In this document: piece after piece, positions 7,746 through 64,000 of the stretch
Position numbering within the stretch: the first letter of the stretch is position 1
Layout: each line of letters begins with the position of its first letter
From: Mytilus californianus
Lineage: Eukaryota
NCBI RefSeq assembly: GCF_021869535.1
Contig: NW_026262679.1
Span: 47,306,001-47,370,000, forward strand
Length of the DNA: 64,000 nucleotides
Direction: 5' to 3'
Notes under the pieces: generated by a model
Database searches by the model: none
What the model was told of the DNA's origin: nothing
The model's input: the letters and a program-made list of their open reading frames with translations, nothing else
Made by a program: the position numbers and the translations under genes

Positions 7746-15783
<8,038 letters not shown>

Positions 15784-18013: not shown

Positions 18014-18080
18014 GGTACCAGCAGGATTCGAACTCTGAATCATGGGATCCAAAGGCAGTGCTTTAACCGATTAAGCCAAA
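18014..18080 (-). mobile_element. tRNA-derived SINE head (A and B boxes); diverged second copy near 17674-17737
   Basis: Minus strand reads TGGCTTAATCGG (A-box-like) and GTTCGAATCC (B box). No clean cloverleaf. Confidence 0.6.
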
Positions 18081-18499: not shown

Positions 18500-18600
18500 C
18501 TCAACGGAAATGCGACTGACGGAAGTCAAATTAAATGCGCCATCTGGTGTTAACATTAGTGCCCTGAAAATTAACCTTTCACTTACCCACCGTGAGTTTG
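18500..18600. promoter_or_regulatory. Candidate bidirectional promoter for DCAF12 and the kinase gene
   Basis: ETS-like ACGGAAATG (18504) and ACGGAAGTC (18519); CTCF/YY1-like GCGCCATCTGGTG (18537-18549); donor-like sites on both strands at 18586 and 18592. Confidence 0.45.
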
Positions 18601-18616
18601 ACAGTTTCAGTAAAAA

Positions 18617-19499
18617 CTAGAGTCTAGAACACACCCGCGAAATCGCGGGTATTTAGAGCTTGGTTGAAAGTATGTAAACTGTTATAGGGTGAATTTTTGT
18701 AAAAAATTTTATGTCTGGAGAAATTCAGAAAAGGTATCAAACTGAGTCATAAGCACTTGGAGACAGGACAATTATTTTAAGCCCTCTCCCTTTTTTCCAA
18801 AGTCTGTTATTTTTTTGCTCTCTGTTAAATTGCATGATTTTCGCGTTTCTGTATACTATGACCATAGAACTACATATAATATAAATAAAGTGTATTTGCT
18901 ATTAACTATCAATTCCATCCACGGCGATCACTGCTATATAATTTATATAGAGAGTCTCTATATATTATAGGATTATAATCATAGTATAATGCAGAATAAC
19001 GCGAAAATAATTGTCCTGTCCCCGAGTAATTATGAAAATTATGTTTAAAGAGGGGAGTAAAGGGAGGTATCTGCACGATCGAAAGAACGCGAAATAAAAT
19101 TGCCATTTCACGATGAGCGAACAATGAAAAAATTCTTGCACGTTGATCTTTTTATCGATTTCAAGAAACATGGTGAATAACGAACCTTTTTCACGGCTGC
19201 ACATGAAATAAAAAGTGGCAAAACATGTTGCTCGAAAAAAAAACCTTTACCCCCTCTTTTAAAGTTTAAAATCGGAAGTCTTGGGTATGACTTAAAAGTC
19301 GGTCTGATGACGGAAACAATATCCGGAAGCCTTTTTCTTCGTTTTTCTCCCAAAATAACACAAACTGAATAATCATAAGAATGGATGACAAATGCGACTA
19401 TGCATGGTACCTATAGGACACAGAGGCATGATGATTAATTTATTGGGGAAGGAAGAGAAGCGACACACAAAATGAGGTCTTCTCGTTTAATAGTATAGA
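18617..19499 (-). mobile_element. Complete non-autonomous Helitron (883 bp)
   Basis: Minus-strand 5' end TCTATACTA at 19499. 3' hairpin ACCCGCGA-AA-TCGCGGGT at 18633-18650 and terminal CTAG at 18617-18620. Inserted between A and T with no TSD. Confidence 0.85.
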
Positions 19500-21009
19500 T
19501 ACTTGGGAGAACCTATAACCCTGTATTGTAATACTACAAGTAATACATTGTACTGAATTTTTGCCATAGAATGTGAAGTTATGTGTTAATACAGTTTTAT
19601 TACTGTTTAACATAGATATAATATGGAGTTCAGATTACTGCAGAAATTCTGTGGAGATTTTTTGATATTCACTTAATTAACCATACAGAATCCAAGGAAG
19701 AGTTTATTGTTCCATTATATATTCAGTGACATGTAATGTACATTTTACGTGATTAATTGACTATGGACAATGATGGCGAATTATCTTTGTATATCCTTGG
19801 TTATATTTATTTTGACATAAGATGGTAATAATTCATATTAAAATATAACTAGTCATGCTAGTCCTGATCACACATACTTTCATCAAATTAAAAACATATT
19901 ATATCACTCACAGGTGAAACATATTTCTTTGATGGATAGAAGAATTCAAAAGATATACCAACTCATTGCATTAGATAGATTGGAATGGAAATGGAAGTTT
20001 GAATATGTGTAAGCCAAAACATGTTCAGTTGTATAGAATTTCAGAGATGTAATCCATCAATATGTGTCCAAAGATATGAATTGATGTCCACAAGGACAAT
20101 TTAGGTAAGATATATTATGATATAAAAAATTAGTCTTGAAGAGCAATCATAATACGTTGTTTGTAATAAAATGTATCAACAACTTAAAGCTTTGAATATA
20201 CATGTACAGGATAGACCAAATGTACCAACAGGAGCATTTCAAATACAAAATGTAGGTGTCAGCTCATCAGATATTGAAAGGGCTCTAGGAGCTTGAAATG
20301 TTCCTGAGTAGAGAGTTAAATGTCTATATGTATTCCAGATTTGATTGAAAATACAAAATTGTATGTAGATCATCATGCTTGTTTCAATATTTTGTTTAGA
20401 TTATTTTATGTAACCCTTAATGGCTTTGTTAATCCCCACTGAGATTAAGAAAGAGATAGAGAGAGAGTTGAGAACTCAAAAATCTAGTTTAACTGCCACA
20501 TGTTAATTTTAATGTGGCTGAAAATTTAGATATCTTGTCAGTCATGTCAGTGGTTGTCTTTTGTTTTCTTAATGTTTTATCAAATATGGTATGTTGACCT
20601 TATGTTGCTTTTATTTTGTTGGATGACATTTTGTACATGCATGGGCCATGACGGCAATAATGCCTCATAAATTACCCTAAAATCTATTGGAGATAAAATT
20701 TTCATCTTTTTCTGAAACTTCATGAATAATCTGAACCAAATTTATCAGGTATATTATATGGAAGATCATTCATATGAATATATTATTTCAGTATGATGGG
20801 ATAAACATTATGGGTTCTTAATTCTCAGGAGTCAATTTTTAAATTTTTTGTCGTGGGAAGTACAAGACCACTTCTTTTGAAACTTCAAATGAATGATTAT
20901 TGGCATATATCATCTATTGAGAATCCTTGTTTTGTATTGATCAGGTAGCATAGAAGAATAAAATGCATAAATAAATGTTATGTCTTTTTAAAATATTTTC
21001 AGAGAAAAC

Positions 21010-24000
21010 ATGGATGTTCAGAAAGATACTCGACCAAATGCAGCCGATATGATATCTTTACTGGAGACCAATATTGTCTGTACAGTGTCCCATATTGAAG
21101 AACTAAAAGCATATGAAGACAGGAATTTTTATTTAAGAATTGTAACGAGTGAACAAAACCAGTGTGATTACATAGGGAATTTAACAGAGTTTGTAGTAAA
21201 AGTGACAAAATGTGAAGAAATGAGCGAATTAAAGTGGAAATCTCTTAAGAAAATATTGAACTGCCTTCTGCATAATGGTTTTACCTGCACAAAGTTATTA
21301 ACTTCATATAAGATGGAGAAGAATGGTAAGTTTATACATGTATAATTTTGTACAATGATTATTTAAAACTTGGGACTACAGTCACTGTGCATTTGTATTT
21401 GGACTTTTCGAGAGAAAAAATTATATACTTTTATCCACATTTTTTATCTTATTCGTATATTAACTTTCATTTTAAATGTTTAAAGGGGGATAACTCTTTT
21501 ATTGTTTACTATGTGTATGCAGCTTTTAGACATAAAGTCCCCAGTTTTTCCAATGTAATATGTTTTTAGTTTTATTTTAATAAATAGTTTATTAGCACTG
21601 ATTCCTTTAAATGAATTAAAATATTGGCTACAAACTAGTACATTGAAAAAAGAACACAAGATACAATGTGCATGTCCACTAAACACAATACTGAATAGTA
21701 GAAGATGCAAGGTACATTTGTATACATCAGTGAGATATTTTTTCCTATTCTTATCTTGCTTTTACATTTAAGTTTTGAATGATAAGCATAGTCTTTCTTC
21801 AACAATGAATAGCATATAAATAGAGATTAAATTGAAGTTTCATCTCATACTTTGAATTCAGAATACTGTGCTTTACTAAAGATAAGATAAAACTAATCAA
21901 TTAGAATCTGGTATAAATTACTTTTTGTGATATGTGCATATATATATTTTGTTTTATAATTTCAGGAAAAAATTATTTAGTACTACTTTTGAATTACATA
22001 CAAGGAAGCCCATTGATGTACCATTGGTCAAAACTTAATAAGGCTATGGTGATTAAACAAGTGGGAGAAATGGTAGCTAATTTACACAACACATTACAGG
22101 TATGTTAATCAGAGACCAATCATGGTAAAGAAGTAGGGTAAATATGGATGACCTCAAAATTGATCTTGAAATGCACAGAACAGACAGTGAATTATTATTT
22201 TAAGCAGAAAAATGTTGATCTGATCACAATGCTTATGATATTACATCACAGTAAAAACCAATTGTTCATTAACATCATTCACGCCGATTTACCTCAGGTC
22301 AAAGGGTGTAACTCATTCACAAAAAACAACTTGAGATTGGTCTCTTCTTTAGAAAGTCATCTAAAGCTGTGTTGATCTTTTAATGTCTTTAGTGGTAAAA
22401 ATAATAATTGCAAATCAAATAATGTTGTTGTTTTGTAATTCACGTACCAATGTACATTTTTCCTCGAAGTTCTGTAGTGTTAATTTTATTTAACTAACCA
22501 GTCATTCACAACTCCTTTGTAATTTCTAATCTGTCTTCCATTGATATACTGCCACCCTTGCATATTGCCCAATATTTGCTTGGTCCAAAAAAGTTGGGAT
22601 TAGTGAGGGAGCACTGTATAAATAGTTATTTTCTTAATTAACAAGCTCATGTTTTTGTTCAATAAGGGATTTAATGTCAATTACGAAAATCTGACTTTGT
22701 GTCTAAATGCTTGTAGTATATAAACAACTCTTTAAAGTACAATTTTTAATTTGCATTTTAGACTTTAGATCCTTCATTGTTGGCTGCAGAGAAAGATGAA
22801 GAAGATGCCTGGGTCCTAGAAAATGCCAGTGTTATGTTAGGATATTTAATTGCAATCAAGGTACTAGGTTAATAAGTTTTCTTAGAACATCCTCCTGCTG
22901 ATTCATCTCATATTTTTAATCATTTGATTTATTTATGTTATTGGTAAGGTCTTTATCAACCAGATATATATTATTTCACATAGTGGCTGGGACTTAAAAA
23001 ATTATGTAAATTGGAAATTAATATGTTTGACTAGACTTTTTCAAAATATACCTGTGCATATTTACCTGACTAATTAGTATGTAGCTGCATATTGATGAAT
23101 ATGCAAATGTTTTAATTCAATGGAAGATTTTCTATCAAATACAAATTCTGAATTTGTGGAGGTTTGTAGACATATCATTAGACTGTGGGTTTGTAATTTT
23201 TTGTTTTCAGACTCTACACAGAAAAAATCAATAGCAAATATGAACATCCTTTGGTATAATAACTTTTTGTTTTGATGAAAATCAGTACTCTGTACTACAG
23301 TACAAATAAAAGTTTTAAGTTCACATTGTTTTTAATTTCATTTTCTTTTTTTAGGATGATAAGGAAAGGGAGGTAATAGAATCAATAATTAAACAGTTTA
23401 TTATCTTAATGGAGCAGAATGGAGAACATTTTACAAGAGGTAAACATGTTATTTAATTATCGCATTGGTTGATTCATGACTGATACCCAGATAACATGCT
23501 AACCTTGGAGTGTGGTAGGTCATGGGTTTGAACCCATGCTGGGTAAAACCAAAGATTTGAAAATTGGTATTTACTGCTTCTCTGCTTACCATACAGAAAT
23601 TTGTAGTAAGAGCAAAGACTGGATGTCTTGCAGTCACAGTAATGTAACCTAGTAGGATGAAATGTCTTCTGAATGTTACACTAAACTAGTACATAAACTG
23701 GAGGCTCTTAAGAGCCTGTGTCGCTCACCTTGGTCTATGTGCATATTCAACAAAGGAAACTCTCCAACATTGTAGACAAGAACAGAATTCATGACAAAAA
23801 TCTCTTGTTTTGTTGATCTTAAATTGCTGATCATTTTATAGTCAGTTTAGTTTCTCTCTATTTTCTTTAGTTTTTGCTCAAAACACAAAAGAGGGTTAAA
23901 AAAATCCTCATTTAAGGGCAATCACTCATATAAAGGGTGACAGTCTAATAACTATATTGGCAAAATTTGACTTGTTAGTAGATCTTGCCTTGCTGATCAT

Positions 24001-25727
24001 TTTTGTGATTTAAAGTGTCAATTTATCTATTATAATTTTTATCATATTAGGCAAAACGCAAAAAAATGATAACAATCGTCATTAAAGGGCAATAACTTCA
24101 ATAGGGAGTTGTAGGACGATTTCCTCCATATTGTCTAAATTGTAGATCTCGTCTTGCTGATCATTTTTGCTAATTTAAGTTTCTATCTTTCTATTATAAT
24201 TTTTAAGATATAAGGCAAAAACGCAAAAAATTGGTGAAAATTGTCATCAAAGGGCAATAACTCTAATAATGAGTTGACTGACGATTTCGACTCATAGACT
24301 TATTTGTAGAACTTTTTTTGCTGATCATTTTAGCATTTTTAAGTTTCTCCCTATCTATTATAGTTTTCAAGATAATAGGCAAAAATGAAAAAAATGGTAA
24401 AATTTGTCATTTAGGGCAATAACTCCTATAAGAAGTCATCTGACAGTTTTGATGTATATAAACAATTGGTAGAGCTCAACATTCTGAACATTTTCGCCCC
24501 GACAGATTTTCTCTATTTTTAACAGTTTTCAAAATAATAGACAAATCTTGCATTTTACCCCTATGTTCTATTTTTAGCCATGTCGGCCATCGTGGTTGGT
24601 AGGCAGGGTCATCGGACAAACTTTTTAAACTAGATACCCCAATGATGATTATGGCCAAGTTTGGATAAATTTGGCCCAGTAGTTTCAGAGGAGAAGATTT
24701 TTGTAAAAGTTAACGACAACAGAGGCCAACAGACGCCAAGTGATGAGAAAAGCTTACTTGGCCCTTTGGGCAACTTTAGGTCAACATGTGGCCTAGTACA
24801 AAGCAGGGTTTATATCTTTGTAACATTTAAATATTCTCATCCTGAATATGCATTGAATTTTCTATTGGACATGAAACAGCAACACCAACCAATGAATTAC
24901 AGGCTCCCAACGTGAGACAGGCACATATAGAATTTGAAGTAGTTAAAAATGTTTGTGAGCGCTCAACCCTCCCCTAACCTGGAGATCGGTTACCGTTAAT
25001 ACATAAAAAAAAAGTTTGGACCGTACTCTACCATATCCACCCTATACAATAAGGTCTTCCTGTACTGTGTAAGATAGAGATGGCACATGATGATCGTATG
25101 TGTAACCTTCTTTTCAAACAACGCTTATTTGACAACAATTAAATGCTTCAATTTTGTATAGATTGTAAATTATCCCAAGACATCTTGGTATAGTCATAAT
25201 GATATATATTTATATATCCTTGTACTTTTGCAGGAATAGTTCATGGAGATTTACATGATATGAATCTAATTGTGAACTGGAAAGATGGTCAACTTCAGCC
25301 ACATTGTCATTTTTCTGGGAATTATACAGTTCAAGATCTGTTTGGAATAATAGACTTCAGTGATATGTGTGTTTCCTGTTATATTTATGAAGTTGGACAG
25401 ATTATTCGTGATTTAATGGTTTCAACATGCCCAGATAATTGTTATATAGTGGCAGTTACCTTTTTGTCAGGTTATTTGAAATGCAGAAAATTAAATCAAC
25501 ATGAACTAAGTATTTTGTTTATTTCTATAATGACATCACTTTGTCAGTATTATGTTATAAGTGAATATAAATTCCATGGACAGTCTGACAATGAATATGC
25601 AACACTAGGTGCAAAAGAAGCATATCATTTGATTATGGAATTTCATAATACAAATGATATTTTTATGTCATTTCTGTCAAAGTTCTTACAAAATGAATTT
25701 CACATTGATTTGATACATTCCTCCTAG
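21010..25727 (+). CDS. HYKK: Hydroxylysine kinase-like (AGPHD1; APH/choline kinase fold), 375 aa
   Basis: Exons 21010-21325, 21966-22099, 22762-22860, 23355-23439 and 25234-25727 are in frame (1128 nt). Motifs YEDRNF, FVVKV, HGDLHDMN and IIDFSD are present. The acceptor at 21002 implies a 5' UTR exon upstream. Confidence 0.85.
23490..23680 (+). mobile_element. tRNA-derived SINE fragment (MetaSINE-like)
   Basis: GGGTTTGAACCC box-B-like motif followed by AAACCAAAGATTTGAAAATTGGTATTTACTGCTTCTCTGC. Confidence 0.55.
23694..24775 (+). mobile_element. Helentron/HINE-like element with internal tandem units
   Basis: Start hairpin AGGCTCT-TA-AGAGCCT, repeated AAGGGCAATAACT/TTGCTGATCATTT units, end GACGCCAAGTGATGAGAAAAGCTTACTTGGCCC. 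Confidence 0.6.
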
Positions 25728-47874: not shown

Positions 47875-49640
47875 ATTATATATCTATCGCTACACTCTAC
47901 ACATATATCACCACACTCTATACATATATAACCACACTCTGCATATCTTTCTACACACTATAATACGTATATATCTATCACCACACTATATATCTATCAG
48001 TACACTGTTATGAGTTGTATGGTTCGCTACTGACCTCCTATGGGTTAGTAGTAATGCTGCAGGTCAAATCCCTTATCATGTTTTTAATTCACCCTCTATG
48101 GTGGGGGTCAGTGGTGAACCGTTTAACAAATTTAGTGCAAACGTGATTTTTTCAGCAGCTTTTTGTAAAAAAATAAACAATGAAATACAATAAAATCAAT
48201 AGATTACGTCACCATTAACAGTAGACGTGACATCATGAACCCACTATTAAATTTACTTACCCCCTATGAATACTTGTGATGGCCTTAAACCAATCACAAC
48301 ATAAAAATTTACCCAAAGTGCAAGAAATACTTATCACCCCTATGTATATATCTAACACCAAACTCTCAATATATATATATCACCACACTCTATATATCTA
48401 TCTACATATATAAATCTTACACCACACTCTATATACATATATCTTTTACCACAATCTATTTACATATATTTCAGTGCACTATACATTTATCACCACTATC
48501 TATACATCTATCACCATTCTTTATACATATATAACCTATATATATTAAAATTCTCATTATATATTTATTACTTCACTCTAAACATATATTATAACACTCT
48601 ATATATATGTCACCACACACTATATATGTATCACCACTATCTATATATCAATCACCATACTCTATTCACATATCACCATTTTGTATACACCTATCACCAG
48701 ACTCTATATATGTATCACCACTATTCATATATCTATCACCACATACTATATATCTATTACCACACTCTATATATATATCACCACACTCTATATATATATC
48801 ACCACATTCTATAAATCTATCACCATACTCTATATATCTATCACCTCACTTTATTTATCTATCAGTACACTCTATATATCTATCATTACACTCTATATCT
48901 ATCACCACACTCTTTATATCTATCACCACACTCTTTATATCTATCACCACACTCTATATATCTATCACCACAATCTATATATATATATCACCACACTCAT
49001 TATATATCTATCACCATACTCTATATGTCTATCACCTCACTCTATATATCTATCACCATACTCTATATATCTATCACACTACTCTATATATCTATCACTA
49101 TACTCTATATATCTATCACCACACTCTTTATATCTATCACCACACTCTTTATATCTATCACCACACACTATATATCTATCACCACAATCTATATACATAT
49201 ATCACCACACTCATTATATATCTATCACCATACTTTATATATCTATCACCTCACTCCATATATATATCACCACACTCTGTATATCTATTACCACACTATA
49301 TATCTATCACTACACTCTATGTCTATCTCCACACTTTATATATCTATCACCACTCTATATATCTATCACCATACTCTATATATGTATCACCACACTCTAT
49401 ATATTTATCACCTCACACTATATATCTATCATCACACTCTATATATCTATCACCATACTCTATATATCTATCACCACAATCTATATATCTATCACCACAC
49501 TCTATATATATCTATCATTACACTCTATATATCTATCACTACACTCTATATATCTATCATCACATTCATTACAATATCAACACACTGTGTATATGTATAA
49601 CCACACTCAATTATATATCTATACCCACACTTTATCTTTC
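47875..49640. repeat. ~21-bp minisatellite (ATCTATCACCACACTCTATAT), core ~48600-49570
   Basis: Dozens of variant units; the plus strand is almost free of G. Confidence 0.95.
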
Positions 49641-49814: not shown

Positions 49815-52800
49815 ATGTCCAAGAATAAATGGTCAAAAATAGATAGTTTGGTACGTATGTTTATGTTGAGTAATGAAATTTAAATACCAAATGTATACGT
49901 ATAAAAAAGAAAATATGGTTTGATTGCCGATAAGACAACTCTCCACTAGAGACCAAAATGACACAAAAATTAGCAGCTATAGGTCAATACAGAGTATAGT
50001 TCATAATTATTTTAAAGGATCCCTTCCTTATGACACACTTTTGATATTTATAGTAACTTATAAGGTAGATAAGCATCAAAAGTTAGTCTAGTTACCTAAT
50101 GACAGCAGTATTTTGTAACTGTAAACCAGCGATTGCTTTCATTACATTTCATTCTTTTTAATTTATTGAAACATTATTGTATATAATTCCCAAACTTGTT
50201 ATTATACACATTGATGTTAAAAACTATGGTTCTTTATATTTTATACTTTTATTTCGATTCAAATAGTCCATGTTCAATGAAATATACAGTAATAATTTAA
50301 GTAATGGAAGATTGCAAGTATCAGCTACACGTGTACACATTCATAGATTAATGGTTTTGAAATTGTGGTTTTATTAATCATGTTACTGTTTTAAACAAAC
50401 TAGAAATATATTTTAATTTTACTTCTGAATTTAATGCCCTTTTAAAAAATGTTTTGAAATATTTTTAAAGGTGCAGACTTGGGTGGAAGATGAAGATCCA
50501 AATTTGTTGGTGGTTTATCTTCCAAAGAGTAGGAATAGTAGGCAGCAGGTGATATGTAAAGGTAAATGAGCTATTTATAAATATGGAAAGATGAAGTTAT
50601 ATTCCTTTTTTACTGGATTTTCAATAGAAAAATCAGTTTTTTTGTTTTTGGATGTACGGCAGGAGGGAAGGCTGGCCAGTGGCTGCCAATCAGTTTTCAT
50701 TCATTAACATGAAAAAGCATTTCAGAAATCTTTTCAAATTTACATCTGTTGTTTCGTGTGAGTGAATGAAGGTCAAGTTCAATTTTCACAATTTTAGGTG
50801 TTCTTGTTTTTCAGTTTTACACCTTTCGGTAGCAAATTTATTTTTATTACATATATATGAATTTGAGTTATTTCCCTTTGAACAGAAACCAATTATGAAT
50901 ATTTCTTTGTCATTTGGTCTCATGTAAAAAAAAAAATCAATTTTAGTCCTGTCTTAAAATTGGTCCTCATTTAGGTCCAAAGGGTCAAAAATACAACTTT
51001 TCTTTAATTTAAAAAGAATTGGTGTTCTTTAATATGCTGAATGTAAGTGGTATTTAAATTTTTTATTGTAATTTGAAAATAGATATAACATTATATATTA
51101 TTCCACTGTTTATACATATTGATAGTTTAATCAATATTTGATTGGTTGAGACTATCCCACGTGTCATTGAACAAATCTTCATATTCCCTTCTCAGGATCA
51201 TATTCACCTCTGAAATGTTGGGATTACATAGTACGACGTTAAGCACGGTTAATGTACATAACGTTTTGAACTTCTTATTCTTCTTAAAATAGTGATAGCA
51301 AAAATCAATGTCATGTTCAAGTTTATTTCAGACGATAAGACACGAAGACTAATAATGAACTTTTGATCCGTACTGTTTATCAATTTGTATGTCATGTTAA
51401 GTTTAACTTATAAAAATAGGATAAGAAAAAAAAATTAGGCAAAATAATAATTAATGTATTGATAGTAAACAAAGCATAAACAGTGGAATAAAACATTCAT
51501 TTCCCTTTGCCTCGGAAGAGATGAAGATTTGTTCACCCTTGAAAAATCATATTTCCCTTGGGCAGAGCCCTCGTGAAACATGAATATTCTTGGTTGAACA
51601 AATCATATCTCCCTCAGGCATGGGAAATAAATGTTTATAATTTTAGAGAACTATTTTTTAGTGGTTAAATCATAATTAATTTTATAGAACTATTTTTGCT
51701 GTTTATATCACTGGTTCATGGAAATATCTTTGAGTTGTTTCCTTTTCAACAGAAATGGTAAAATTAATATTTATATGGCTTTTATAATTTAATGATGATT
51801 GTCTCTGTTCAATTTATTTTAATCATTACTTTAGTTGTAAAAATGTTCTTATAGCTATTCCTTTTAAGTCATTTGTGTTATGAATGTAGATGTTACACTT
51901 GTTACATAGTATTTTATTTTTGTTGTTTGTGTTATTTTATATTTTTTACTTGATCCTTTTTGGTGGGTCAATAGGTTTTCTTACACTTGTGTAAAGGGCT
52001 TTTGTGGTAATGTTTTTTCAAAGGAGAAGGGGCAATTTTTTTTTCAAAGATGCCGGGGCAATAAGGGTCTTATTTGGGTGAAATAAAAGTGTAAATTGAA
52101 AGGTTTGCATACATATTCAAAAATTTGTCATAACTACACTAAGTTACAAGGTGTTCATAAAATATAGATCTTACATTGAACAAGCTACAATAGGAACTTC
52201 CCATGACAAAATGGGTGTGTGTCTGTCAGTGCTGATGACAGTTAGCACAGAAAAGTGTCCATTAAGTACAAAATGTATCAGAAACAATTTATAACAACAA
52301 CAAAAAAATGTGTACAGATACGTCAGATAGCAAAACCTGAAATAAAATGATATTTTGATCTGGCCTATTATTTAAATGTGTTCAATTGATATAAAGAAAA
52401 ATTGTGTTTTGAAACATTTCTTTTGGCAGTCTGTAATTGTAATATATGTTTTAAATAGCTACAGTGTAACCATAATGGTTGCTCTCAAAACAACATTTAA
52501 TATGAGCATTTTCTTTTTGAAAAATTTAAATTGAATGGTATTAATGGAAACAAAAGTTTTAAACAATGAATTTAACAGGAAATATATTGAAAATATTCCA
52601 GGATCTCTGAGGTTGATGGATGTCATAACCCCGGACTTTATTGACAAATTCACAGAAACAGCGTACAGAAAGGCACCATATGTGCCAACAATAAGAGAAG
52701 GTATACACCATCTAGTATTAGATTTATTTTGATAGATAAGAACTTTTTAAAAAAGAAATAGAAAATAAGGGCAAATGTCATTTCCTAATGTGCATTGTTA

Positions 52801-55800
52801 ACAAACTTGAAAGAATCAATTACACAGTTGGGTTTTATTTTGTCATTACACTTGTTGATATAGTAATAAACAAAGTACTGAAGTACTGAACATGAGATGA
52901 CCACAAGTTCTGGTGGATGGTTACAGGCACTTGTCTGAGAGAAAAAAATCATACCTCTATACCTGAAAATTCGGTTCAGGTACATAGATATGTTTTTATT
53001 TTTCTGACATGAGTTCATGTGTGGATGATGAATAAATGACAGTGAATTCAACCTCACGGTAATAATTATTATATTGTAGTGATATAATTTTTTGTTATCA
53101 GTAGAATCTGGTTTGTTGCTAAACATCATAAAAATATTTGAATCAGATTTATATATATATTTAGCAGAACGATTCGTCTGCATGCCTTAACATGAATTTT
53201 CGATATTCATGATTTGTTACTGATTAATATATTTCTCATGACAAAACATTTTCATATCAATAATCTATGTTCTTAAAAAATATTTTTAAAAATATTTATT
53301 GATGAAATTATTTTTAACTAGGCATGAAATGTTATTTTGCAGTCGATAATGCCCTGGTATTCATATGATTTACACAAAGTGATTGGTGCTTAAAAACCCA
53401 AGGGCTGTGTGCAGATATTCTGCACCTGAATACCATGGAATATCCTCTAGTGTAACAGTTCATAGACAAAAAATTTAAAACTTGCCATAATTTCGAGAGA
53501 CATAGATGTCAGTATATGGTTTATTTCATATTATAATTGTATATTAAATACTTACAGATCCCTAAGGCTTATAAGTCTTTTGCAATTGATTAAAATGTTA
53601 AGTATTCTGTTTTCTTAATGATGTCTTCTTTTATATTTCGATAAGTCTTACCAGCTATCACCAAAGATGTTGTTCAGACAAACACCACTGTCAAAAGACA
53701 TCTTTTATCGGATATCACTCAAAAATACAGTAAGTATATTAGTATGGGCATATGAAATTTATTATAAATGCATTCACTTTATGGTTTTAATCTGATATGA
53801 TCCAAAACAATTTTTAGAAAGTACAAAGCATTTCATTGATTGATGTACAGTATATAAAATAAAGTTCTATTAATAATGAAGCTTATAATGGGTTGATTTT
53901 AAAAGATTGCATGTTTTTTTCTAAATGAGTCCATCCCTCTTTTAAAAGTGAAGTTATAACTTAAGATATTACATGTAGTTCCTGAAGTATAGTGTTTTCC
54001 TATCTGACAAAAACAAGTAAGATATTTTGTCCATATATTGTGTGACTATGCATCCTGGTCATAAATTTGTCTGAAATCCAGTGGATTTTACCACATTTTG
54101 CCAAATTTTCTTTATTTTGAACTATTTTGGATGTAAAAATCAACGCTTATGAATTAAACTTTTACAAAAATAGTTCTATTTAACTTTTTCACATGTCTAT
54201 AAGTCATCTTAAAATATTTTTTATCTTGTAACATTGAACTTTATAAAAGGGGCCAAATATGGTCCTTAGCATTTTTTGAACTGTAACATTTGTCATATTT
54301 CTCATTCATAAAAAGAAGACTAGCTCCACGTGATTGATACAGCTTTCATAGTTACTTTATCTTTGATTTCTACAATTGCAAAAAATAAATCAATAAATTC
54401 CAACATTATTTTGAAAAGATTGTTCACCTATATATATACTCTTTAATAACAATAATGAGAGAATTCAGATTGTAATTTTATGCAGAGATGTAATCAAAAT
54501 GTAATCATGAGGAGGTCAATGAAACTATCATGAAACAAACATGATTGGTGGTTATTTTAAACATGTAATTGAAAACATTAAATTTACTGTTAATCATAAA
54601 TTTCTGATTACTCATTACAATTAATAACAAGACCTTTGCCACAATGTCATGTAATAATTACTTTTAAAGTACTATTGTTATTGTGTATAACCCATTTTTT
54701 TTTTTAAGTGACCAAGAAGAAGAAAATCAGTAGAGGATATTGGGGGAATGATTTAATGAAGCCAGAATTTTGGCCTGAAGATGTTCCATTTAAAAGTCCA
54801 TCTACAAATAAAGGTAACTTGTTTTAATCCATAAGTTTTTCTGCATAGTTATTTAGTAGTTTTACTGTTTCAATTACATAGAAAGCACTGAAAATTTTAA
54901 AAATGAATACGAACTTTGTAAGCTGAAAATGTTTATACAGTGAACAAGAAAAAAGCCATAGATGTAATGTTTATGTACTTACATTTCAGTCGTTAAATTT
55001 AAAAAAAAAATGTTGAGTGACTTCTACAATTTTTAGATTAGATTCCTGGTATCTGCTTTGATCTTACAAGGTGTTTTACTTACAGGGAATTGGACTTTTT
55101 AATTTGAAATAAAACGGTTCAAAAGGTTTTTGTGTGTACTTTAAACCATAATTTTTTTGTCATGTTGATAACATAATCACTTATATGTCTGTGCATGTTA
55201 TGGAAAAATTGACATGTATATTAGTTTCCATGATAATCACAATATGACAGTGTTCACTGTGGGCTGTTCATGATATTTGAGTTCACCAATATAGTTCAGT
55301 AAAATAATACATTTATTTGACTGTTTTTGAAAGTAATAGCGTAATTGCATCCTCAATACAAACCACTGTGTTTGACATTTCTCTTGGCAATAGTTGTTGC
55401 ATTGTGAATAATAAAAATTATATTTCTTTACCTAATATATCAGTGTATATCATTGAAGGATACAATTATAAGCTAAGTTTTTATTGCAATAAGACATATT
55501 TCAAAAAATCCATGAACTATAATTTTATAATCTATAATTATGTTCAAACAGCTACTGGACAATGCAGTTTATGTGGAGAGGAGATGAATAAGGTTCTGCT
55601 ACATTATGTGTCATGGAAGAATGCTTTGGTAAATTTTCAACATTTATTCTAATAACACATTTTCAATACATACTTCAATGTTATTGGAATAAGGTGTGAG
55701 TTTTGATTTATATATAGATGTTGTATTATAACTTGAAATCATATTATTTATTTTTTAAACTCCTTCTTGTAAGGGATCATATTTTGGGAAGACATGTATG

Positions 55801-58800
55801 AAACCTTATTGTTTTTTGAATTATTGTATTTTTTAAAAGACACCCATACAGTCTTAAAAAGTTACTAGGTGGCTATTATGCTTTTATGCTATTAAGTGGA
55901 AAATTCTGGAAGGGAAACAATCTAAGAAAATAAATATATAACAGTGTTATCTAAATATATCAACAGCAATAATTTAACAACAAATTTTGAAATAAATAGT
56001 GTTTGATAAAATGAGGAAAAGAAATGCATTTTCTAATTATTTAAAAGATATAACTGATATGTGACTTATCTATTAAATGGCTGTATTACTTTACTTCCAG
56101 CAACCATCCAATGACAACAGTCCTTCAACAAATGACAATGTACAGGTAACAAATTTGATGTATTAAATCTAAATCAAAATAATTTAATTTTGGATGTCTT
56201 CTGATTGGCTGACAGTGTTTTGTTTATCAGCTCATAGACATAATTTTGTCATGTGACCGTGACGTCAACACTGTTTTTTCTTGATTTACTGCGGCTTAGA
56301 ATTAAATAATAAGGAATGCATGACTGTAATATTTTTTCTGTCTATTTGAAATAACATCAAAAATGTGGTTCACACTTTCAAATAACCCATTACACCGGTT
56401 ATTCAGTGTGCACCAAATTTTTTATGTTATTTTGAGTAGACAGAAAAAATATTATAGTCATTCATTAACTGATATTTAACATGTATGGTCCTTTTATACG
56501 TTATATGTTGAAATGCATTTTCCAATTATTTAAAATATATTACTGATATGTGACTTATCTATTAAATGGCTATATTACTTTACTTCCAGCAACCATCCAA
56601 TGACAACAGTCCTTCAACAAATGACAATGTACAGGTAACAAATTTGATGTATTAAATCTAAATCAAACAAATATTTTACATATGGTCCTTTTATATGGTA
56701 AATGGTGGAATACCAGAATTATACTGATTTACAAAAAAGGTTCTGCTGATCATTTAATATGTATACATCTACATGGGCGTATTGCATTTCCGCTAATTTT
56801 TCAAAGTTCCAATACTACGTTTCTGGAAACTTAAAGTATACGTATCCAGAAATTGTATTTATTACTTTTCCGGAAATTTACCTGGTAGTAAATTATTAAT
56901 ACTTGAATATATGTTAGATAAATTATTTATTTCATATTTTTATGCAAAAAAGGTTCTGATCTTATATCTACAATATACTAGATATGAAAAAAATGAAAGT
57001 TTCACCTTAGTGAAAGATGATGATGTTGGAATTGTTATATTTTTATGTTTCACCAACTTGAAATGTCTATGATCGTATATGCAATGAAATAACTAATATT
57101 TTCATAGATGGCACAGTTAATTATTCAATACATGGGTGTAAAATGGTAACTACATTCCTCTTGTGTTTGCGCTACTTCCACTTTTATCAAAATGTGGGAT
57201 CTGCTTATTGATGTGTGCACTTCCCGAAGATTAACTCTCCAGTCCGAGGTAGATCATATTGACTTTGAATATGCAATGCATACTGCTGTTACAAAAATTT
57301 CATGCTGCTACAATCAGTTGTTGCAGGTTTCATTTAGGACAAAGTTCAAGGTACTCCTTTAACTGGCCACCCGCTGATTGATTCTTCGACACAAACGAAG
57401 TTTGTGTAGATAAGATTGAAACAACAGCAGGGGTCCAGATAAGGTACTCCTTACTTATTTCCTCGAAAAAGTAATAATTTATTTATTCCGGAATCGTTAC
57501 TATTTTCTTGGAAAAGTGAGGTATTTATTTCCGGAAACGTAGACTTTTTTGGCGGAAATGTCATCTTTTTTTCCCGGAAAAGTCATGCCAATTTGAGGAA
57601 ACGTAAAACGCCGATCTACATAATTGAAAGTGCCAAACTTATTTATTACATCTTTGTATTGGATAGTATTACTTTTATATACTGTATTCTTGTTGGGTTG
57701 ATTTAGTGACTGCTTACTTTATGGTGTGTACTTTCCTACCATTTAGGACCATGTTACTTTCAAGATTTTTGTTTCTTGTCACAATTGATTTCCATGCAGG
57801 ACTTTATTATATACCAAACATTTAATTTGAAGTGTATTTACTTGAGAAAAGAACTGTTTTCCCAACAAGTCCACTGTTTTCAAATTTCATTCCCATGATC
57901 TTAAGTGATACAGGTCAGCTGTCATTATTTAGATCTGTGTTAAAATTTGTGTTATTGAAGAAATGTTTACTTTTTTGGTTGACATGGCCCAAGACCAGTG
58001 TAAACTATTGTTATCCTATGTTGTCTGTCCATAAAATTTTATACTTTTACAATTATGTATTAACTCTTTACTGTAACACTTTCAGCAACAGGACCATGCC
58101 AATGAAAGTTTATGTGACTTTTTGATAGATGGTAATATAGAGGTAAATATACTTTTACTACAAACCTGACCACAAACAAATTAAGCATGGCAGAGGATAT
58201 ACACAATATGTTGACATATATACAGTCCACGGCTGGATGTGTGATGAGTATATAGTGTGTGATGATGTGTAAATAAGTGTAATTGATTCAGACCATATGA
58301 GTATTTTGACAATATAAATTTCATCTGTTCTTCTGGAAATATACCTGTATGCGCATTATATAAATGCTCTTTTCAGTATTAAGACCATACATATATTTCA
58401 AAACAGTATATGATATCAGATTTCTAACAGTCATGTAATTATAAAGTTTAAACACATTAAATTGAAACATGTATTTAAATGTGTTTCATATGGGAACACA
58501 ACATTCTGGATTGATCATTCATTTAACTGTTATTATTTGATTATATAAAGAAGATTTGTTGGCTTGTACACTTATTAATTATCTTTGGGCAAAATAAATG
58601 ACCACTTCAGAAGGATAACACACTATGGTAGATACCTATAAATGTTTTAACAATATATACATTTTAGGTGTTACAGTGTGAGGTGGACCAAGGACCAACC
58701 ATGTACACAGCAGTACCTGTATCAAGTAAATCATTAATAGCTAAATTTTACACTTTTAATAAAGCGATCATTTATAAAATTGTATTAACACTTTCCACAT

Positions 58801-61800
58801 TAGCAGAAAATTTTTACTTATGTAGTTGTGGCCATTTTCAGTTTTCTGGCTGACAATTGCGCCAATTTAAAACATTTTGATCTTTCATGTTCACCAATTT
58901 GATTCTTTCATTAGTGCTGATTCCATACTTGCTCCTATTTGCATTTGCATTTTACATGTGATAGTAAATAACCTTACGGGTACTATACGTAAACGGTATA
59001 TTGGTAAAATCTGGATATAAATGGTCTTCATATCTGTTTAAGTTAACTTTGGTACATATTAATTATTCCGTAACTTGGTTATGACAAGATGCACATGATG
59101 CACATGGAAATTAAGGAGGAGAGGAGTCAATTTTTTACATATCACCAGGTCAGTATCCTGAAACATAAGCAACATGACGGGTGCCACATGTGGAGCAAGA
59201 TATGCTTACCCTTCCGGAGCACCTGAGATCACCCCCAGTTTTTGGTGGGGTTCGTATTGCTTAGTCTTTAGTTTTCTATGTTGTGTCATCTGTACTATTA
59301 TTTGTCTGTTTGTCTTTTTATTTTTGGCCATGTTGTTGTCAGTTTGTTTTCGATCTATGAGTTTGACTGTTCCTCTGGTATCTTTCGTCCCTCTTTTCTG
59401 AAACATAATAACATAGTTTACGAATATACAATCAAGACATGTACAGCCAGAGTCACAACAGAGTTTTTATTTGTTTCTGTGTTTCTTTTTTGTTTGTAAT
59501 TTATCTGTAAATACAATTTAGGTCAACCACAGACACAAACAGAAGTAAGGTGGAAAATCACACCGAACACACGGTTCAGTTATGACAATGAGGTACACGG
59601 TGAGTGTCTTCATGTACATTTTAAATTTTTTATTACCATATATAATTCAAATGTGAAACATCAAAGTTTCAAGCTGCTTTATCTTCATACAAGCTAAGTT
59701 ATCACTTTATCACAATAACCACACGGAATGAATGCAATAAGATATGGAGCATCTCCAGTGCAGCCACTTTCTGTTAAGACATTATAATTAGTTTGAAATT
59801 TAACACAATTATAGTGTACTAGGAACAATTTGGTCAAAATTTTACTTAATTCAACATGTTTATTGAATGAGAAAATTTAGATAAGCATGAAATAGTTCAG
59901 AAGAAATCTAGAAATTGTCAAAGTTAGTGTTTGAAAAAAATTCAACATTTTAGTTTTAATGATATTTTTACGTAGTTCTGTTTTTCATAATGCAGAAAAC
60001 AATGAAGATATTTAATTTGTATGTCCATTTCAAATGCTGTACCATGTGTTGTTTATTCAAAAGTATATTTAAAAAAACAAAAATTGAAGTCATTAGATAT
60101 CATGTGCATTATAAATTCTAATATTGCATGTTTGCTATAATAATGTTTCATTTACAGGCACTCATGGTCTGTACAATCTGAACAACAACTGTTGGTTGAA
60201 TTCGGCACTGCAGTCCTTGAAACAAATCAAGTTTCCAGAATTAGACAGAAATAGTAAGATAATCTCCAACCCAACTACAATGGATACTTTTTTAAAATAT
60301 TGAAATCATGTTATATTCATTCATATATTTATTTATTGGTTCAGAGATAGTCAGGTAATTGTTGCAATTGCACACTAATCTGCTTTAGGTCTCTTTCATT
60401 GGCATGCATGTATTAATCTGCAGACTATACAGAATATAATTACGTCATGAATTTTACAGCCTAAATTCAGGACATTTCAGTTATTGTAAATAAAATTCAT
60501 AGATTAGTGACAACTTATAGTCAATATACATTTACAACCAACACATGATTTATGAGAAAGGTTCACAAAATTCATATTCATCATCAGATATGTCATTCCC
60601 TGCATTGTTGTTAATTGCCCAGAAATGTATCTTGGAAAATTTGGATAGATACATTTCATCCTTAATTTGAGATAACATACTTGGCAAATTGAAAATGATA
60701 ACAAAGAGAGGATGCATAGATTTTTGTAAATGTCCTCTGAATTAACTGTCTGCATAGATATGAGAAAATAGAAATCAATTCACAGTGTTTTTTTTTTCTA
60801 CATTGTCATTGACCAAATATCATTTCTCCAAATGAACATGCATTTCTTATCGCATAATGTAATATATCATGCTTGATTTAAGGTTTGGATGAAGATAGCA
60901 CCATTACCAAAGTAATGAAATTGATTGTTGAGTTGCAGCAACCTGTCCCAACAAAAGTAAATCACTCTGTTGAGCATATCCTGGTAAATACTATGTATTT
61001 TAGTGATCTGATCCTGTTTTACTTAATAAGAGTAACATATGATTCCTGAATTAACAAAAAATCATCTCAAAATTACAAGTTAAACTGAGGATAATATATA
61101 GCAACATGATGGTCAATTTTATTCCTTTTTGGCTAAAATAACACGCTTTTTAAAAGATTTTTTATACATTTAACATTCACACCTTTTTTGTTTCAAAGGA
61201 AAAATTAACAAGGATTTTATATGATTTTCCCCAAAAAGATGACATTTTGAACTGCATGTAATCATATGGAAAGAAAAAATGGGATTAGTGGGCCAAAAAA
61301 AATCAATGGCACTACATAGATAAAACTAGAGGATCCTTAATATCTGACAAAAATTCAAATAATGAGCATCATTAAACATAAAGGGTAAAAAACTGATAAC
61401 TTGAAGTACCTGTTCTTATTTTAAGTTTTTTGGGTTGTCTTTCTTTGTTACTTGCATTTACATCCAAAATTGTGATAACACTTCGTACAATGTATGAAAA
61501 AGTGAAATTTTGATCAGCAATCTTCTTTGTATTTAATACTTACTGTTTCTTTTATGCTTTCTGGATGATAAGTATGTACACCTATAGGCACACATTGAAG
61601 AAGAATGTTTATCATAATGGTCTCCCCAGGGGTATAATCATAGGTCACTTCAGGGATAAATCTATAAGAAGACCATATTTAACTTAGGTTCTTTGAAGAT
61701 TTCTGTTACTTCAGAATATTAGGACAGTAACCAAATTTATTGGATAACTTCATACTGTTTAAATATCATATTTTTGAATTTGAGGATCGTTCTATTAATA

Positions 61801-63782
61801 TTATCTCCATACAATTACATATATGAGATCATTCGACATTGTAAACTACCCAATTTAGAAATCATTTTAATGTATGGTGCTTCTTTGTCCCATGGACAGG
61901 TTCATTTTTTAAAGCCAATTTCTCCCTTTACCTTATCTGAATGAATAATTTATATCTCAGAATTGAAACTGCTTTCTAACTTTCTTTGATTGATCAAATA
62001 ATGCATTGCAACTTCAATTATGATTTAAAAATTACAGGATTCACTTCATTTTGATGATGCCTTTGGAGACACAGACAAAGGTATGCAGCAGGATCCCTGC
62101 AACTTCTTGGAAACTGTTCTTCAGAAGCTAATGAGAAAGGGTTTATTTCAACTGCTTCAAATTAAGAATACACTGAAATGTAGACAGTGTGAAGTGGTAT
62201 GAACTTCTTATCTTATCATTTCAAATTTACATTCGCATACTTTGTTAATAATAACCATTATTGCAAAAATAGATATTATATACTTCTTTGATATTTTTGC
62301 TGTGTTTGTGAAATTATACCAAAGCTTAAATCAAAGACAATAACCTCACAAGACTTAGTTTAGTAATGCATATTTACTGTGGTTTTAAAGTTAAGTTACA
62401 GACCAAAAAATGTTGAATGAAGGATATGTTCTGGATATGGCGTGCGGTGAAAAAATAAAAATAAACTGAAATTTCTGTCAGACTTTAATATATATGTTAA
62501 AATTCCATACAAAGCATGAAATTTGTTTAAGAAGAATTGATTGTTTGTTGCAGGAACGTACTGGATCCAAGGAACCACTACCGATACTTTTTGTGGATGC
62601 CTGCCGAAATGAAACACTACAGGATTCTGTTGATCGCTTCTTCCATGAAGAAATAATGGAAGGCAGTGAATCTGTGTAAGATATTTAACTTATTCATCAT
62701 GTTAAAAATACCAGAATACTGTTCTTTTTTCTTTTTCATTATGGTTCCTTATGACCAGAGGGTTAATCTATAATTATATTTGGAAAGTCTAAGGTCAAGG
62801 TCACACATTCACTTCAATGAATAAACTTATAGACATATATAATATATGGAATATTATACAATAACAACCCTCTGAAGGGGTTATTTTATAAGCCTTCATG
62901 CAGTTATTTTACAAAGAGAAAAAATCTTTTGTAGATTTGTAATTTAGTCATTTCATCTGTCTTTGTTGGACCAACAACTGTTTTTTAAAAAAATGGCACA
63001 TCGGACATTTAAATAACTTTTTATTTCACATCATCTTTCGACCTTCACACTATATATATATAATCAATCAATATCATTGCAATTGCATTCTTTTTTTTCT
63101 TTATTTTACACTGCATACATACATGAAACTGAATCTATTTTGTTATTTCAGCAATTCATATTTAATGCATTTCATGCTGTTGTGTAAAGTACTTCCATTA
63201 ATTATTTTAAATCTCTTTACCAAGTCATGAAGGTCTCTGGTAAAGGATAGTAGCCAATTTTATAATAACATTTCCATTTCTGTTGCATTTCTGTCTGTTT
63301 TTATGCACCATTTATGGGCATTATGTTTTCTGGTCTGTGTGTCTGTTTGTTCGTCCGTCCTTTCATTAGTCTGTTCATTCGTCTGTTCATTCGTCTGTTC
63401 GTTCGTATGTCTGTCCAGCTTCAGGTTACAGTTTTTGGTCAATGTAGTTTTTGATGAAGTTGAAGTCCAATCAACTTGAAACTTAGTACACATGTTCCCT
63501 ATGATAATTTCTAATTTAAATGCCAAATTAAAGTATTTACACAATTTTCCTGGTCTACTGAACATAGGAAATGATAGTATCGAATGGGGCACACGTGTAC
63601 TAGGGACACATTCTTGTTCAATTTATGTTTCTATATATTAGGAATTGTAGACATTGCAAGCAGGCAACACAACATATAAGAACATCAATGGTATGTGAGG
63701 AACCTTCGACCTTAGTGTTGCAAATCAAAAGGTTCAACCCGATTACTTATCAAAAGTCCATGATACCAGTTAAACCTTCAAG
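49815..63782 (+). CDS. Protein with an NRF1/Ewg-like N-terminal domain and a USP (C19) deubiquitinase domain; continues beyond the window
   Basis: Phase-compatible GT-AG exons 49815-49850, 50471-50561, 52602-52700, 53646-53729, 54709-54813, 55552-55628, 56101-56145, 56590-56634, 58668-58725, 59522-59599, 60158-60253, 60883-60983, 62038-62196, 62554-62675, 63642-63782. Motifs GYWGNDLMKPEFWPEDVPF, GLYNLNNNCWLNSALQ, QQDPCNFL, CRQC, CRHC and LVLQIKRF. The start codon and linker exons are less certain. Confidence 0.8.
56775..57613. mobile_element. 839-bp non-autonomous DNA transposon with 8-bp TSD
   Basis: ATCTACAT at 56767-56774 and 57614-57621. Imperfect TIRs GGGCGTATTGCATTTCC and CGGCGTTTTACGTTTCC; internal TTTCCGGAAA motifs. 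Confidence 0.75.
59171..59400 (+). mobile_element. Dispersed repeat, probably the 3' tail of another retroelement family
   Basis: ACATGACGGGTGCCACATGTGGAGC...CCGGAGCACCTGAGATCACCCCC..., recognised from recall as an abundant mussel repeat. Confidence 0.5.
63299..63618 (+). mobile_element. HINE-like element with GTCT/GTTC microsatellite
   Basis: TTTTATGCACCATTTATGGGCATTA start, CTGTTCATTCGT repeats, GGGACACATTCTTGTT end. Confidence 0.6.
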
Positions 63783-64000
63783 GTGAGCATTACTTTAATA
63801 CAAACATGCTGTAAAATAGCCTTCTTTCAGCCTGATGGGTCTTTAAAATATATACCATTTTTAACAGTATTATTATTTTTGCATGAAATGAAAATGCTCT
63901 TTAAGGGAATTTTTTGACATGTATAACAATTTCATGCTTCTCAAAGAAGTGCCCACACAAGAGAGTATCCAAAATTATATTTCATAGACGTATGCATATA

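Follow-up and report, generated by a model that had tools for sequence, protein, structure and literature searches.

In a 64-kb window of the Mytilus californianus genome (the whole stretch of DNA analysed here, 64,000 nt), one spliced and weakly expressed protein-coding gene probably joins an NRF1-like module to a ubiquitin-specific protease (USP). The predicted protein would begin with an N-terminal region of about 165 aa (exons 1 to 6), of which exons 4 to 6 would supply the signature loop and helices of the module found in NRF1/Ewg and in fungal YDR124W-like proteins. A low-complexity and probably disordered linker of about 95 aa (exons 7 to 11) would then lead into a putative USP-type cysteine protease domain, of which exons 12 to 16 encode the Cys box, the QQD box, both zinc-ribbon CxxC pairs and KRF. 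The combination of domains would be new, its parts being known.

Gene structure and coding capacity

We rebuilt the exon model between positions 49815 and 63782 of the plus strand, where canonical GT-AG sites join the exons into a single frame free of stops (Table 1). The sequence-only reading had proposed 15 exons spliced in phase without stops, and each of these was recovered with canonical splice sites. It had missed one, as RNA joints reveal a 78-nt in-frame exon (59522 to 59599) between its exons 10 and 11; with this exon, the part of the gene within the window comprises at least 16 exons and 464 codons. We also found the peptides that it had quoted: exon 4 encodes VLPAITKD, and KYMTKKKKISRGYWGNDLMKPEFWPEDVPF spans the junction of exons 4 and 5. 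An acceptor-like site at 49807 leaves room for a true start upstream of exon 1.

The open frame and exon structure are beyond chance. Read in the two alternative frames, the joined sequence runs into 30 and 41 stops, GC content is 0.40 in the exons versus 0.285 in the introns, and GC by codon position (0.46/0.35/0.39) is coding-like. At the stop-triplet frequency of the introns (0.069), the 94 codons of the linker would be free of stops by chance with a P value of about 0.001. Rfam and tRNA scans were blank (48 to 64 kb and 44 to 64 kb of the window).

Table 1. Exons of the putative NRF1-like/USP gene, in positions of the window.
Feature	Position	Strand	Content	Basis
Exon 1 (as modelled)	49815-49850	+	ATG start, 12 aa	Sequence, exon model
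Exon 2	50471-50561	+	N-terminal region	Exon model
Exon 3	52602-52700	+	N-terminal region	Exon model
Exon 4	53646-53729	+	LPAITKD...KRHLLSDITQKY, presumed first helix of the NRF1-type module	Exon model
Exon 5	54709-54813	+	Signature GYWG....KPEFWPEDVPF	Pfam, PDB and ESM Atlas matches; RNA coverage
Exon 6	55552-55628	+	CSLCGEE...VSWKNAL, last of the NRF1-like part	Exon model, RNA depth
Exon 7	56101-56145	+	45-nt low-complexity linker, first copy	Exon model, plus-strand RNA coverage
Exon 8	56590-56634	+	Identical second copy of the 45-nt exon	Exon model, RNA coverage
Exon 9	58086-58142	+	Linker	RNA joint 58142>58668
Exon 10	58668-58725	+	Linker	RNA joints 58142>58668, 58725>59522
Exon 11 (newly found)	59522-59599	+	78 nt, in frame	RNA joints 58725>59522, 59599>60158
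Exon 12	60158-60253	+	USP Cys box GLYNLNNNCWLNSALQSL	Pfam UCH, solved USPs, RNA joint at acceptor
Exon 13	60883-60983	+	USP domain	Exon model
Exon 14	62038-62196	+	QQD box and first CxxC (CRQC)	Sequence read
Exon 15	62554-62675	+	USP fingers region	Exon model
Exon 16	63642-63782	+	Second CxxC (CRHC) and LQIKRF	Sequence read
Exon 17 (tentative)	63906-63964	+	REFFDMYNNF...	In-phase acceptor, open frame

Likeness to NRF1 in exon 5

Searches of Pfam, the PDB and the ESM Atlas were run with single exons rather than with the spliced protein, and in these comparisons the likeness to NRF1 is real, narrow and significant for exon 5 only. Exon 5 matches PF10491 (Nrf1_DNA-bind) over profile positions 151 to 172 of 213 with 16.4 bits (E 0.0076; cut-off, 23.5). 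Its best Pfam match is the YDR124W-like family PF11001, at positions 38 to 66 of 124, with 22.1 bits (E 1.6e-4), which likewise lies below the cut-off (31.3). Solved NRF1 appears in the top three of 177,635 sequences when exon 5 is compared with the PDB by phmmer (8k3d, E 0.014; 8k4l, E 0.047), and the two best ESM Atlas clusters carry PF10491. Because NRF1 had been named before the search, the directed chance that this particular family would turn up is about 0.0076/24736 per exon.

The phmmer alignments to 8k3d_A and 8k4l_A place the signature GWG...KP.WWPEDIPW loop of the NRF1 DNA-binding domain in exon 5. The pattern shared with NRF1/Ewg/P3A2 proteins (PF10491; 8K3D, 8K4L) can be written WG....KP.(W/F)WPED(I/V)P(W/F), and exon 5 agrees with human NRF1 223-242 at 12 of 20 residues. 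By eye, a helix exon precedes the loop and a VSW..AL helix follows it, in the same order as in NRF1. The mussel protein departs from NRF1 in that its last helix would be cut short after VSWKNAL and the C-terminal activation domain is replaced by the linker and USP.

Three residues of NRF1, R206, N242 and R244, read bases (PMC10810270). N242 aligns with a Ser in the 8k3d/8k4l alignment, as does R244 when the alignment is extended by two residues without a gap, and a KRH in exon 4 is an uncertain equivalent of R206, placed without statistical alignment. Since the base-reading residues of NRF1 are not kept, any DNA specificity would be expected to differ from GCGCATGCGC.

Beyond exon 5, exons 2, 4 and 6 gave no NRF1 match in Pfam, the PDB or the Atlas, and PDB and Atlas searches with exons 2, 3, 4 and 6 (exon 3 in the Atlas only) returned chance matches only. 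Exon 4, which we presume to resemble NRF1, had no NRF1 match when compared with the PDB by phmmer. For a MADS-like dimerisation domain, exons 2 and 3 gave no signal in Pfam or the Atlas, and exon 2 no NRF1 match in the PDB.

The sequence-only reading had assigned an NRF1/Ewg-like DNA-binding domain to the first six exons. Exon 5 bears this out through its matches to PF10491, solved NRF1 and the Atlas clusters; on the other side stand a score below the Pfam cut-off, the better score of PF11001 and the replacement of N242 and R244 by Ser. A beta-beta pattern like that of the NRF1 dimerisation domain, also proposed for exon 2 and seen there by eye, found no support in Pfam, the PDB or the Atlas. 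Because exon 5 alone matches and N242 and R244 are gone, "NRF1/Ewg-superfamily-like module" is a fair description, while an NRF1 DNA-binding domain with sequence targeting would claim more than these matches show. PF11001, the fungal YDR124W-like helical bundle, was formerly DUF2841 and its function is unknown; we know of no USP fusion in this family. The match of exon 5 to PF11001 points to a wider superfamily that shares the motif and would include the mussel module.

A credible USP half

Exon 12, only 31 aa long, matches Pfam UCH (PF00443) over profile positions 2 to 23 with 23.7 bits (E 4.4e-5; cut-off, 23.9), and in the PDB it aligns with the Cys boxes of over 40 solved USP chains, among them USP28, USP14, USP15, USP4, USP30 and USP2. 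The catalytic Cys, correctly placed at 60190 in an NNNCW box by the earlier reading, is encoded by codon 60190-60192, and the oxyanion Asn five residues before it is kept.

The QQD box, the two CxxC motifs and LQIKRF could likewise be read where they had been reported. In the spliced model the QQD box, both CxxC pairs (four of four zinc-ribbon Cys) and KRF are kept in canonical order, with canonical spacings of 73 aa from Cys box to QQD, 45 aa from CxxC to CxxC and 23 aa from CxxC to KRF. Together with the Cys box and Asn, this order is shared with USPs of family C19 (USP28/25, USP14, USP15/4, USP2). In contrast to the GNTC(Y/F) of known USPs, the mussel Cys box reads NNNCW, and the remainder is too divergent for single-exon matches. 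The exons after the Cys box had no significant match in Pfam or in the PDB and Atlas (exons 14 and 15, chance only), and exon 16 weakly matched the solved USP 6tbm_Q (E 0.42). Among USP accessory domains, we know of none that resembles the N-terminal partner seen here. On these motifs the USP half is credible, and protease activity is predicted.

Relatives and distribution

A phmmer search with exon 14 against 1.84 billion representatives returned CAC5383136.1 of Mytilus coruscus, one chance repeat protein and nothing else. Exon 14 is 63% identical to the C-terminus of CAC5383136.1, and the M. coruscus locus encoding it aligns with the window over 61316-63181 only, at 83% DNA identity. This 1.9-kb fragment of exons 14 and 15 sits at an unrelated locus and ends after exon 15, the copy of which is frameshifted; the CxxC is lost, and no NRF1-like or Cys-box exons were found at the locus. 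We rejected CAC5383136.1 as an orthologue, as it is a chimeric gene prediction whose last exon is the exon 14 copy, part of a pseudogenised two-exon fragment. An N-terminal likeness of the same protein to exon 2 (TW.EDE) was also rejected (E 0.28).

Neither a protein homology search with the open frame of 114 aa that surrounds exon 6 nor a metagenome scan with an exon-14 alignment returned a match. No orthologue or other protein with the same architecture emerged from the protein and metagenome searches run, and an NRF1-like module joined to a USP was absent from the literature found by our searches. The earlier statement that no described protein has this architecture is consistent with those protein, metagenome and literature searches, in which the only relative was the pseudogene fragment of M. 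coruscus.

One explanation is that the gene is a young, lineage-specific chimera or a decaying gene produced by exon shuffling between an expanded NRF1-like family and a USP gene. Its transcription would be at noise level, its protease incomplete or inactive, and a conserved function would be lacking. The missing orthologue among 1.84 billion representatives and the pseudogenised fragment as sole relative would fit such an origin, as would the very low expression, the unusual Cys box (NNNC for GNTC) and the recent duplication of a linker exon. However, none of the 16 exons is damaged and their splice sites are good, no stop interrupts the 464 codons, GC by codon position is coding-like, and the catalytic Cys, the Asn, the QQD box, the four zinc-ribbon Cys and KRF are kept. 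We consider this explanation unlikely; if it were correct, the locus would still be a clean example of exon shuffling.

RNA evidence for a probable fusion of the two halves

RNA was compared over exons 5 to 12, using contigs of runs X1 and X2 and reads of run X9. Three GT..AG joints (58142>58668, 58725>59522 and 59599>60158) connect exons 9, 10, 11 and 12 in contigs of both X1 and X2, and two of the three (58725>59522 and 59599>60158) are also present in raw reads of the stranded RNA-Seq run. In the bins of exons 5 to 12, the covering pairs all have their first mate on the minus strand, at a depth of about 1.3 to 3x per exon and 7x on exon 11. The gene is thus transcribed from the plus strand, with very low expression.

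Toward the 5' side, exon 5 is covered by X9 and by record 1 of X1. This 289-nt record has 151 letters upstream of exon 5, a length that fits exon 4 (84 nt) followed upstream by 67 nt of exon 3. On exon 6, the X2 depths of 0.49 and 0.24 in two bins match 53 plus 24 nt exactly, and the X1 depth of 0.58 is what 31 letters of the same record 1 at depth 3.6 would give. These values fit a record that spans exon 5 into exon 6, which amounts to an indirect exon 5>6 joint. On the 3' side, record 8 of X1 has 65 letters beyond exon 12 with no match to the intron, as would fit splicing onward from exon 12.

Exons 7 and 8 sit in a duplicated 163-nt segment. X1 covers the bin of the first 45-nt copy only and X2 and X9 cover both, and transcripts may carry one or both copies.

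The two halves could instead be neighbouring genes, an NRF1-like gene of exons 1 to 6 and a USP gene starting at the Met of exon 10, with occasional read-through transcripts. Joints 6>7, 7>8 and 8>9 are not among the RNA joints listed (15 further joints lie beyond that list), and the lack of 6>7 from the list in particular would fit separate genes. The Met of exon 10 is in frame, 43 residues before the catalytic Cys and 34 before the start of the USP domain, and between exons 8 and 9 a repeat-rich segment (56751-57705) with transcription from both strands could hide a promoter. With two genes, exons 7 to 9 together with the opening 11 codons of exon 10 would belong to the 5' UTR, but they continue the phase of exon 6 and contain no stop in the USP frame (chance, about 0.014). 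Moreover, coverage does not extend past exon 6 as it would in a terminal exon, since bins 55605-55986 correspond to exon 6 alone, and depth is similar over exons 5 to 12 on the same strand. On balance, a pair of separate genes appears quite improbable.

The RNA joints from exon 9 through exon 12, the even, exon-limited and one-strand coverage of exons 5 to 12, and the open linker without a start all point strongly to one fused reading frame. Exons 9 to 11 are set by RNA alone, and none of their 64 codons is a stop in the USP frame (chance, about 0.01). Downstream of exon 6, the sole Met codon before the USP domain is that of exon 10; as the linker has no Met upstream of it, the coding region must begin further 5', and the only covered exons 5' of the linker are the NRF1-like ones. 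Because we infer the exon 6>7>8>9 joints, we infer the fusion as well.

A possible DNA- or chromatin-tethered deubiquitinase

Deubiquitinases normally reach chromatin via partner proteins or generic nucleosome-binding modules, and the NRF1-type module is usually seen as part of one conserved transcription factor. In the fused mussel protein, the N-terminal module may bind DNA or chromatin and so bring a complete and active protease to nuclear targets. It is possible, and we propose it only tentatively, that an NRF1/YDR124W-superfamily DNA-binding module is here covalently joined to an active USP, giving a deubiquitinase that is tethered to DNA or chromatin and has a sequence preference of its own. 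Such an enzyme may, for example, act on histones or DNA-bound factors at defined loci or mobile elements.

Chromatin-directed deubiquitinases include MYSM1 (SANT/SWIRM plus JAMM), USP16, USP22 and the BAP1 complexes. The mussel protein would share their concept, in which a module that binds nucleic acid or nucleosomes recruits a deubiquitinase to chromatin, but those enzymes use other modules or partner proteins, and none is known to have an in-chain NRF1-type module on a USP. If the proposal is true, a transcription factor-type module in one chain with a USP offers a simple, testable model of locus-directed deubiquitination. It would also mean that the NRF1-type module has been reused as a portable domain in molluscs, here in a genome known for gene gain and loss.

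That the gene instead serves a large transposon as an accessory, its NRF1-like module recognising element DNA, is very improbable: the fragment of exons 14 and 15 at an unrelated M. coruscus locus could suggest mobility, but that 1.9-kb fragment and not the whole gene is repeated there, a tblastn search with the protein of the gene detected no further copy of it in the 64-kb window, the introns are long and filled with unrelated repeats, and around it lie what look to be ordinary host genes and an unrelated Penelope-like element.

The 3' end of the window

The His and Asp boxes of the protease would lie beyond the end of the window (base 64000), and an exact look-up of three ORFs near the 3' end found no contigs reaching past that base. 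After exon 16, the tentative exon 17 would correspond to the LDL-like region that comes after KRF in USPs, with a donor at 63948 or 63964.

A sixteen-exon gene model

The window is AT-rich (G+C ~31%) and contains no N, and the open segments on its + strand between 49.8 and 64 kb are all short, as expected of an intron-rich animal gene. The sequence-only reading had proposed 15 exons here, encoding an NRF1-like domain fused to a USP deubiquitinase. We rebuilt this model from the sequence and obtained canonical AG/GT sites, in-phase splicing and zero stops, with all of the quoted peptides present and the catalytic Cys codon at the position that had been given. Most of the 15 exons have good polypyrimidine tracts and GTAAG or GTAAA donors. 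RNA exactly matched the predicted intron 58142>58668 (a>b denotes a splice joint) and the predicted acceptor at 60158. The proposed direct splice from exon 10 to the Cys-box exon proved wrong, as RNA places between them an extra exon of 78 nt (exon 11), which preserves the reading frame. The corrected model comprises 16 exons and 464 open codons, with 30 and 41 stops in the other two frames. Its G+C content is 0.40 in exons versus 0.285 in introns, and 0.46, 0.35 and 0.39 at the three codon positions. There may be a 17th exon. Upstream, a minisatellite ends ~180 bp before the modelled start codon and gives rise to long but spurious ORFs in each of the three + frames.

Positions of features in the window
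Feature	Position	Strand	Detail
Open segment	14543-14941	-	
Open segment	21010-25727	+	
Minisatellite	48345-49635		21-bp unit, ~61 copies, 77% matches
Gene under study	49815-63782	+	
Exon 5	54709-54813	+	
X1 contig signal	54841-55031		Intron after exon 5
Exon 6	55552-55628	+	
Duplicated segment, first copy	56021-56183		163 nt
High-copy repeat	56178-56559		
Duplicated segment, second copy	56510-56672		163 nt
Repeat block	56751-57705		
GT..AG joint in repeat block	57347>57441		93 nt
High-copy repeat	59043-59424		
Short interspersed repeat	59162-59409		Intron between exons 10 and 11
Exon 11	59522-59599	+	78 nt
Exon 12	60158-60253	+	Cys box
Catalytic Cys codon	60190-60192	+	
Exon 14	62038-62196	+	Longest exon
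Exon 15	62554-62675	+	
Possible 17th exon	63906 (start)	+	

A predicted USP catalytic domain in the C-terminal part

The Cys-box exon alone (31 aa) matches Pfam UCH at 23.7 bits (E 4.4e-5; cut-off, 23.9) and the PDB entries that align with it include the Cys boxes of USP28, USP14, USP15, USP4, USP30 and USP2. After it come, in this order, the QQD box, two CxxC pairs and LQIKRF. The catalytic Cys lies 73 residues from QQD, the two CxxC pairs are 45 residues apart (last Cys to first Cys), and KRF lies 23 residues from where the second of them ends, spacings that are typical of USPs. The USP assignment made in the earlier reading is thus backed by the Pfam match, the alignments to solved USPs, and the order and spacing of the motifs. 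Searched singly, the USP exons after the Cys box gave no significant matches because they are too divergent. By these motifs, the N-terminal two thirds of a predicted USP catalytic domain are present in the window with the nucleophile intact; the His and Asp boxes would be expected past the window end.

An NRF1-like signal in exon 5

Exon 5 (34 residues) matches two Pfam families, both under the gathering score: PF11001, a YDR124W-like helical bundle (E 1.6e-4), and PF10491, Nrf1_DNA-bind (E 0.0076). The solved human NRF1 structures 8k3d and 8k4l match it at E 0.014-0.047, amid chance matches to ribosomal protein uS5. PF10491 is also found on both of its nearest ESM Atlas clusters, one of them molluscan, which at scores of 0.84 and 0.82 serve as leads only. 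NRF1 had been named ahead of any search, and Pfam holds 24,736 families; the appearance of that one family is therefore the outcome of a directed test and very improbable by chance. We take the local homology of exon 5 to NRF1 as real but narrow.

The statistical NRF1 signal is limited to exon 5, as single-exon searches with exons 2, 3, 4 and 6 gave no family signal. By eye only, exons 1-3 bear some likeness to the MADS-like dimerisation domain of NRF1, and exons 4 and 6 to its flanking helices. The claim of an NRF1 domain stands in its local homology and not in its base-reading residues. In the NRF1-DNA structure, bases are read by R206, N242 and R244 (PMC10810270). N242 is replaced by Ser in the mussel protein in the phmmer alignment to solved NRF1, as is R244 when that alignment is extended by two residues, ungapped. 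With both residues aligned to Ser, the GCGC specificity of NRF1 would not be expected of the mussel module, for which "NRF1/YDR124W-superfamily module" is the defensible label.

The probable combined protein and its relatives

NRF1-type modules and USPs are each already known, and the novelty is their combination. We know of no description of the two in one protein, and literature searches returned nothing on this architecture. Domain order and transcription are observed. In the most likely reading, the protein would be nuclear and would use its N-terminal helical module to contact DNA or a partner on chromatin, with the flexible low-complexity linker presenting the USP protease to ubiquitinated targets close by; DNA binding, catalytic competence and targets are what we infer for such a fusion.

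A phmmer search with exon 14 against 1.84 billion representative proteins gave one true match, the predicted M. coruscus protein CAC5383136.1. Its locus, from CACVKT020003353.1 (gene model at locus positions 10001-25452), aligns to the window at 83% DNA identity over a stretch of only ~1.9 kb near exons 14-15, and has neither NRF1-like exons nor a Cys-box exon. The last exon of CAC5383136.1 is a copy of exon 14; the adjacent copy of exon 15 is frameshifted and was left outside the model. The locus has also lost the CxxC. The GenBank entry looks like a chimeric prediction, and we rejected it as an orthologue: it is a pseudogenised fragment swallowed by the gene predictor. Neither a homology search with the 114-aa open frame around exon 6 nor a metagenome scan with the exon-14 alignment gave matches. 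Failure to find an orthologue with such single-exon or single-frame queries is weak evidence of absence, and, for a gene with this open frame, we regard a young chimera without function as unlikely.

RNA evidence for a probable fused gene

RNA over 54650-60350 came from raw reads of X9, a stranded RNA-Seq run of the same species (~6% of the run), and from contigs of three other runs. Contigs of two of these, X1 and X2, carry the joints 58142>58668, 58725>59522 and 59599>60158, on which X9 has 0, 1 and 2 raw reads, respectively. X9 covers all predicted exons from 5 to 12, exclusively with pairs whose first mate is on the - strand, at a depth of ~1.3-3x per exon (7x for exon 11). Intron bins are mostly empty, apart from the two high-copy repeats and the repeat block.

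Across the center of the gene, X1 record 1 is a 289-nt contig of depth 3.6. It matches exon 5 over 107 letters and has 31 left over on its 3' side, and the bin with the start of exon 6 has an X1 depth of 0.58, exactly what those 31 letters would give. For the two bins that span exon 6, X2 depths are 0.49 and 0.24, in line with the 53 and 24 nt that this exon contributes to them and with nothing further. Between exons 6 and 9, no RNA-covered exons were found besides two of 45 nt. X1 record 8 (402 nt) is as long as one 45-nt exon, exons 9-12 and 65 nt of exon 13 would be together. Exons 9-11, known from RNA alone, keep 64 codons open in the USP frame (chance, ~0.01), with no Met before exon 10 and none in either 45-nt exon. 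Joints 6>7, 7>8 and 8>9 are absent among those listed for this interval, with 15 further joints outside the listing, as two genes joined by read-through might leave them; given the strand, depth and frame of the RNA, we consider that explanation quite improbable. A reading frame fused from the NRF1-like part through the USP part is very probable. The full statement, one gene with an NRF1-type module and a USP in one protein, is likely, our lower confidence reflecting the fused frame multiplied by the uncertainty on the module.

Repeats and neighboring segments

The two open segments farther upstream, one with a WD-repeat-like peptide, resemble ordinary host-gene exons and place the gene in a genic neighborhood rather than an obvious transposon; that it is a transposon accessory gene is highly improbable.

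Within the gene, the copies of the duplicated segment (96% identity, 489 bp apart) each hold a 45-nt linker exon together with the splice sites on its flanks, and mRNAs could include either one copy or both. They flank the high-copy repeat at 56178-56559, which the RNA runs contain in great abundance. Both strands of the repeat block are transcribed, and the block contains a short GT..AG joint; its reads show many differences from the window and so come from other copies. In the intron after exon 5, X1 contigs reach a depth of 4.7 (zero in the other runs), which could reflect a repeat or an intronic transcript. The short interspersed repeat, which has no tRNA or Rfam match, is covered very deeply by each of the four runs, reaching ~10^6 in one run of a related organism, and occurs in three copies at 87-95% identity in the M. 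coruscus locus.
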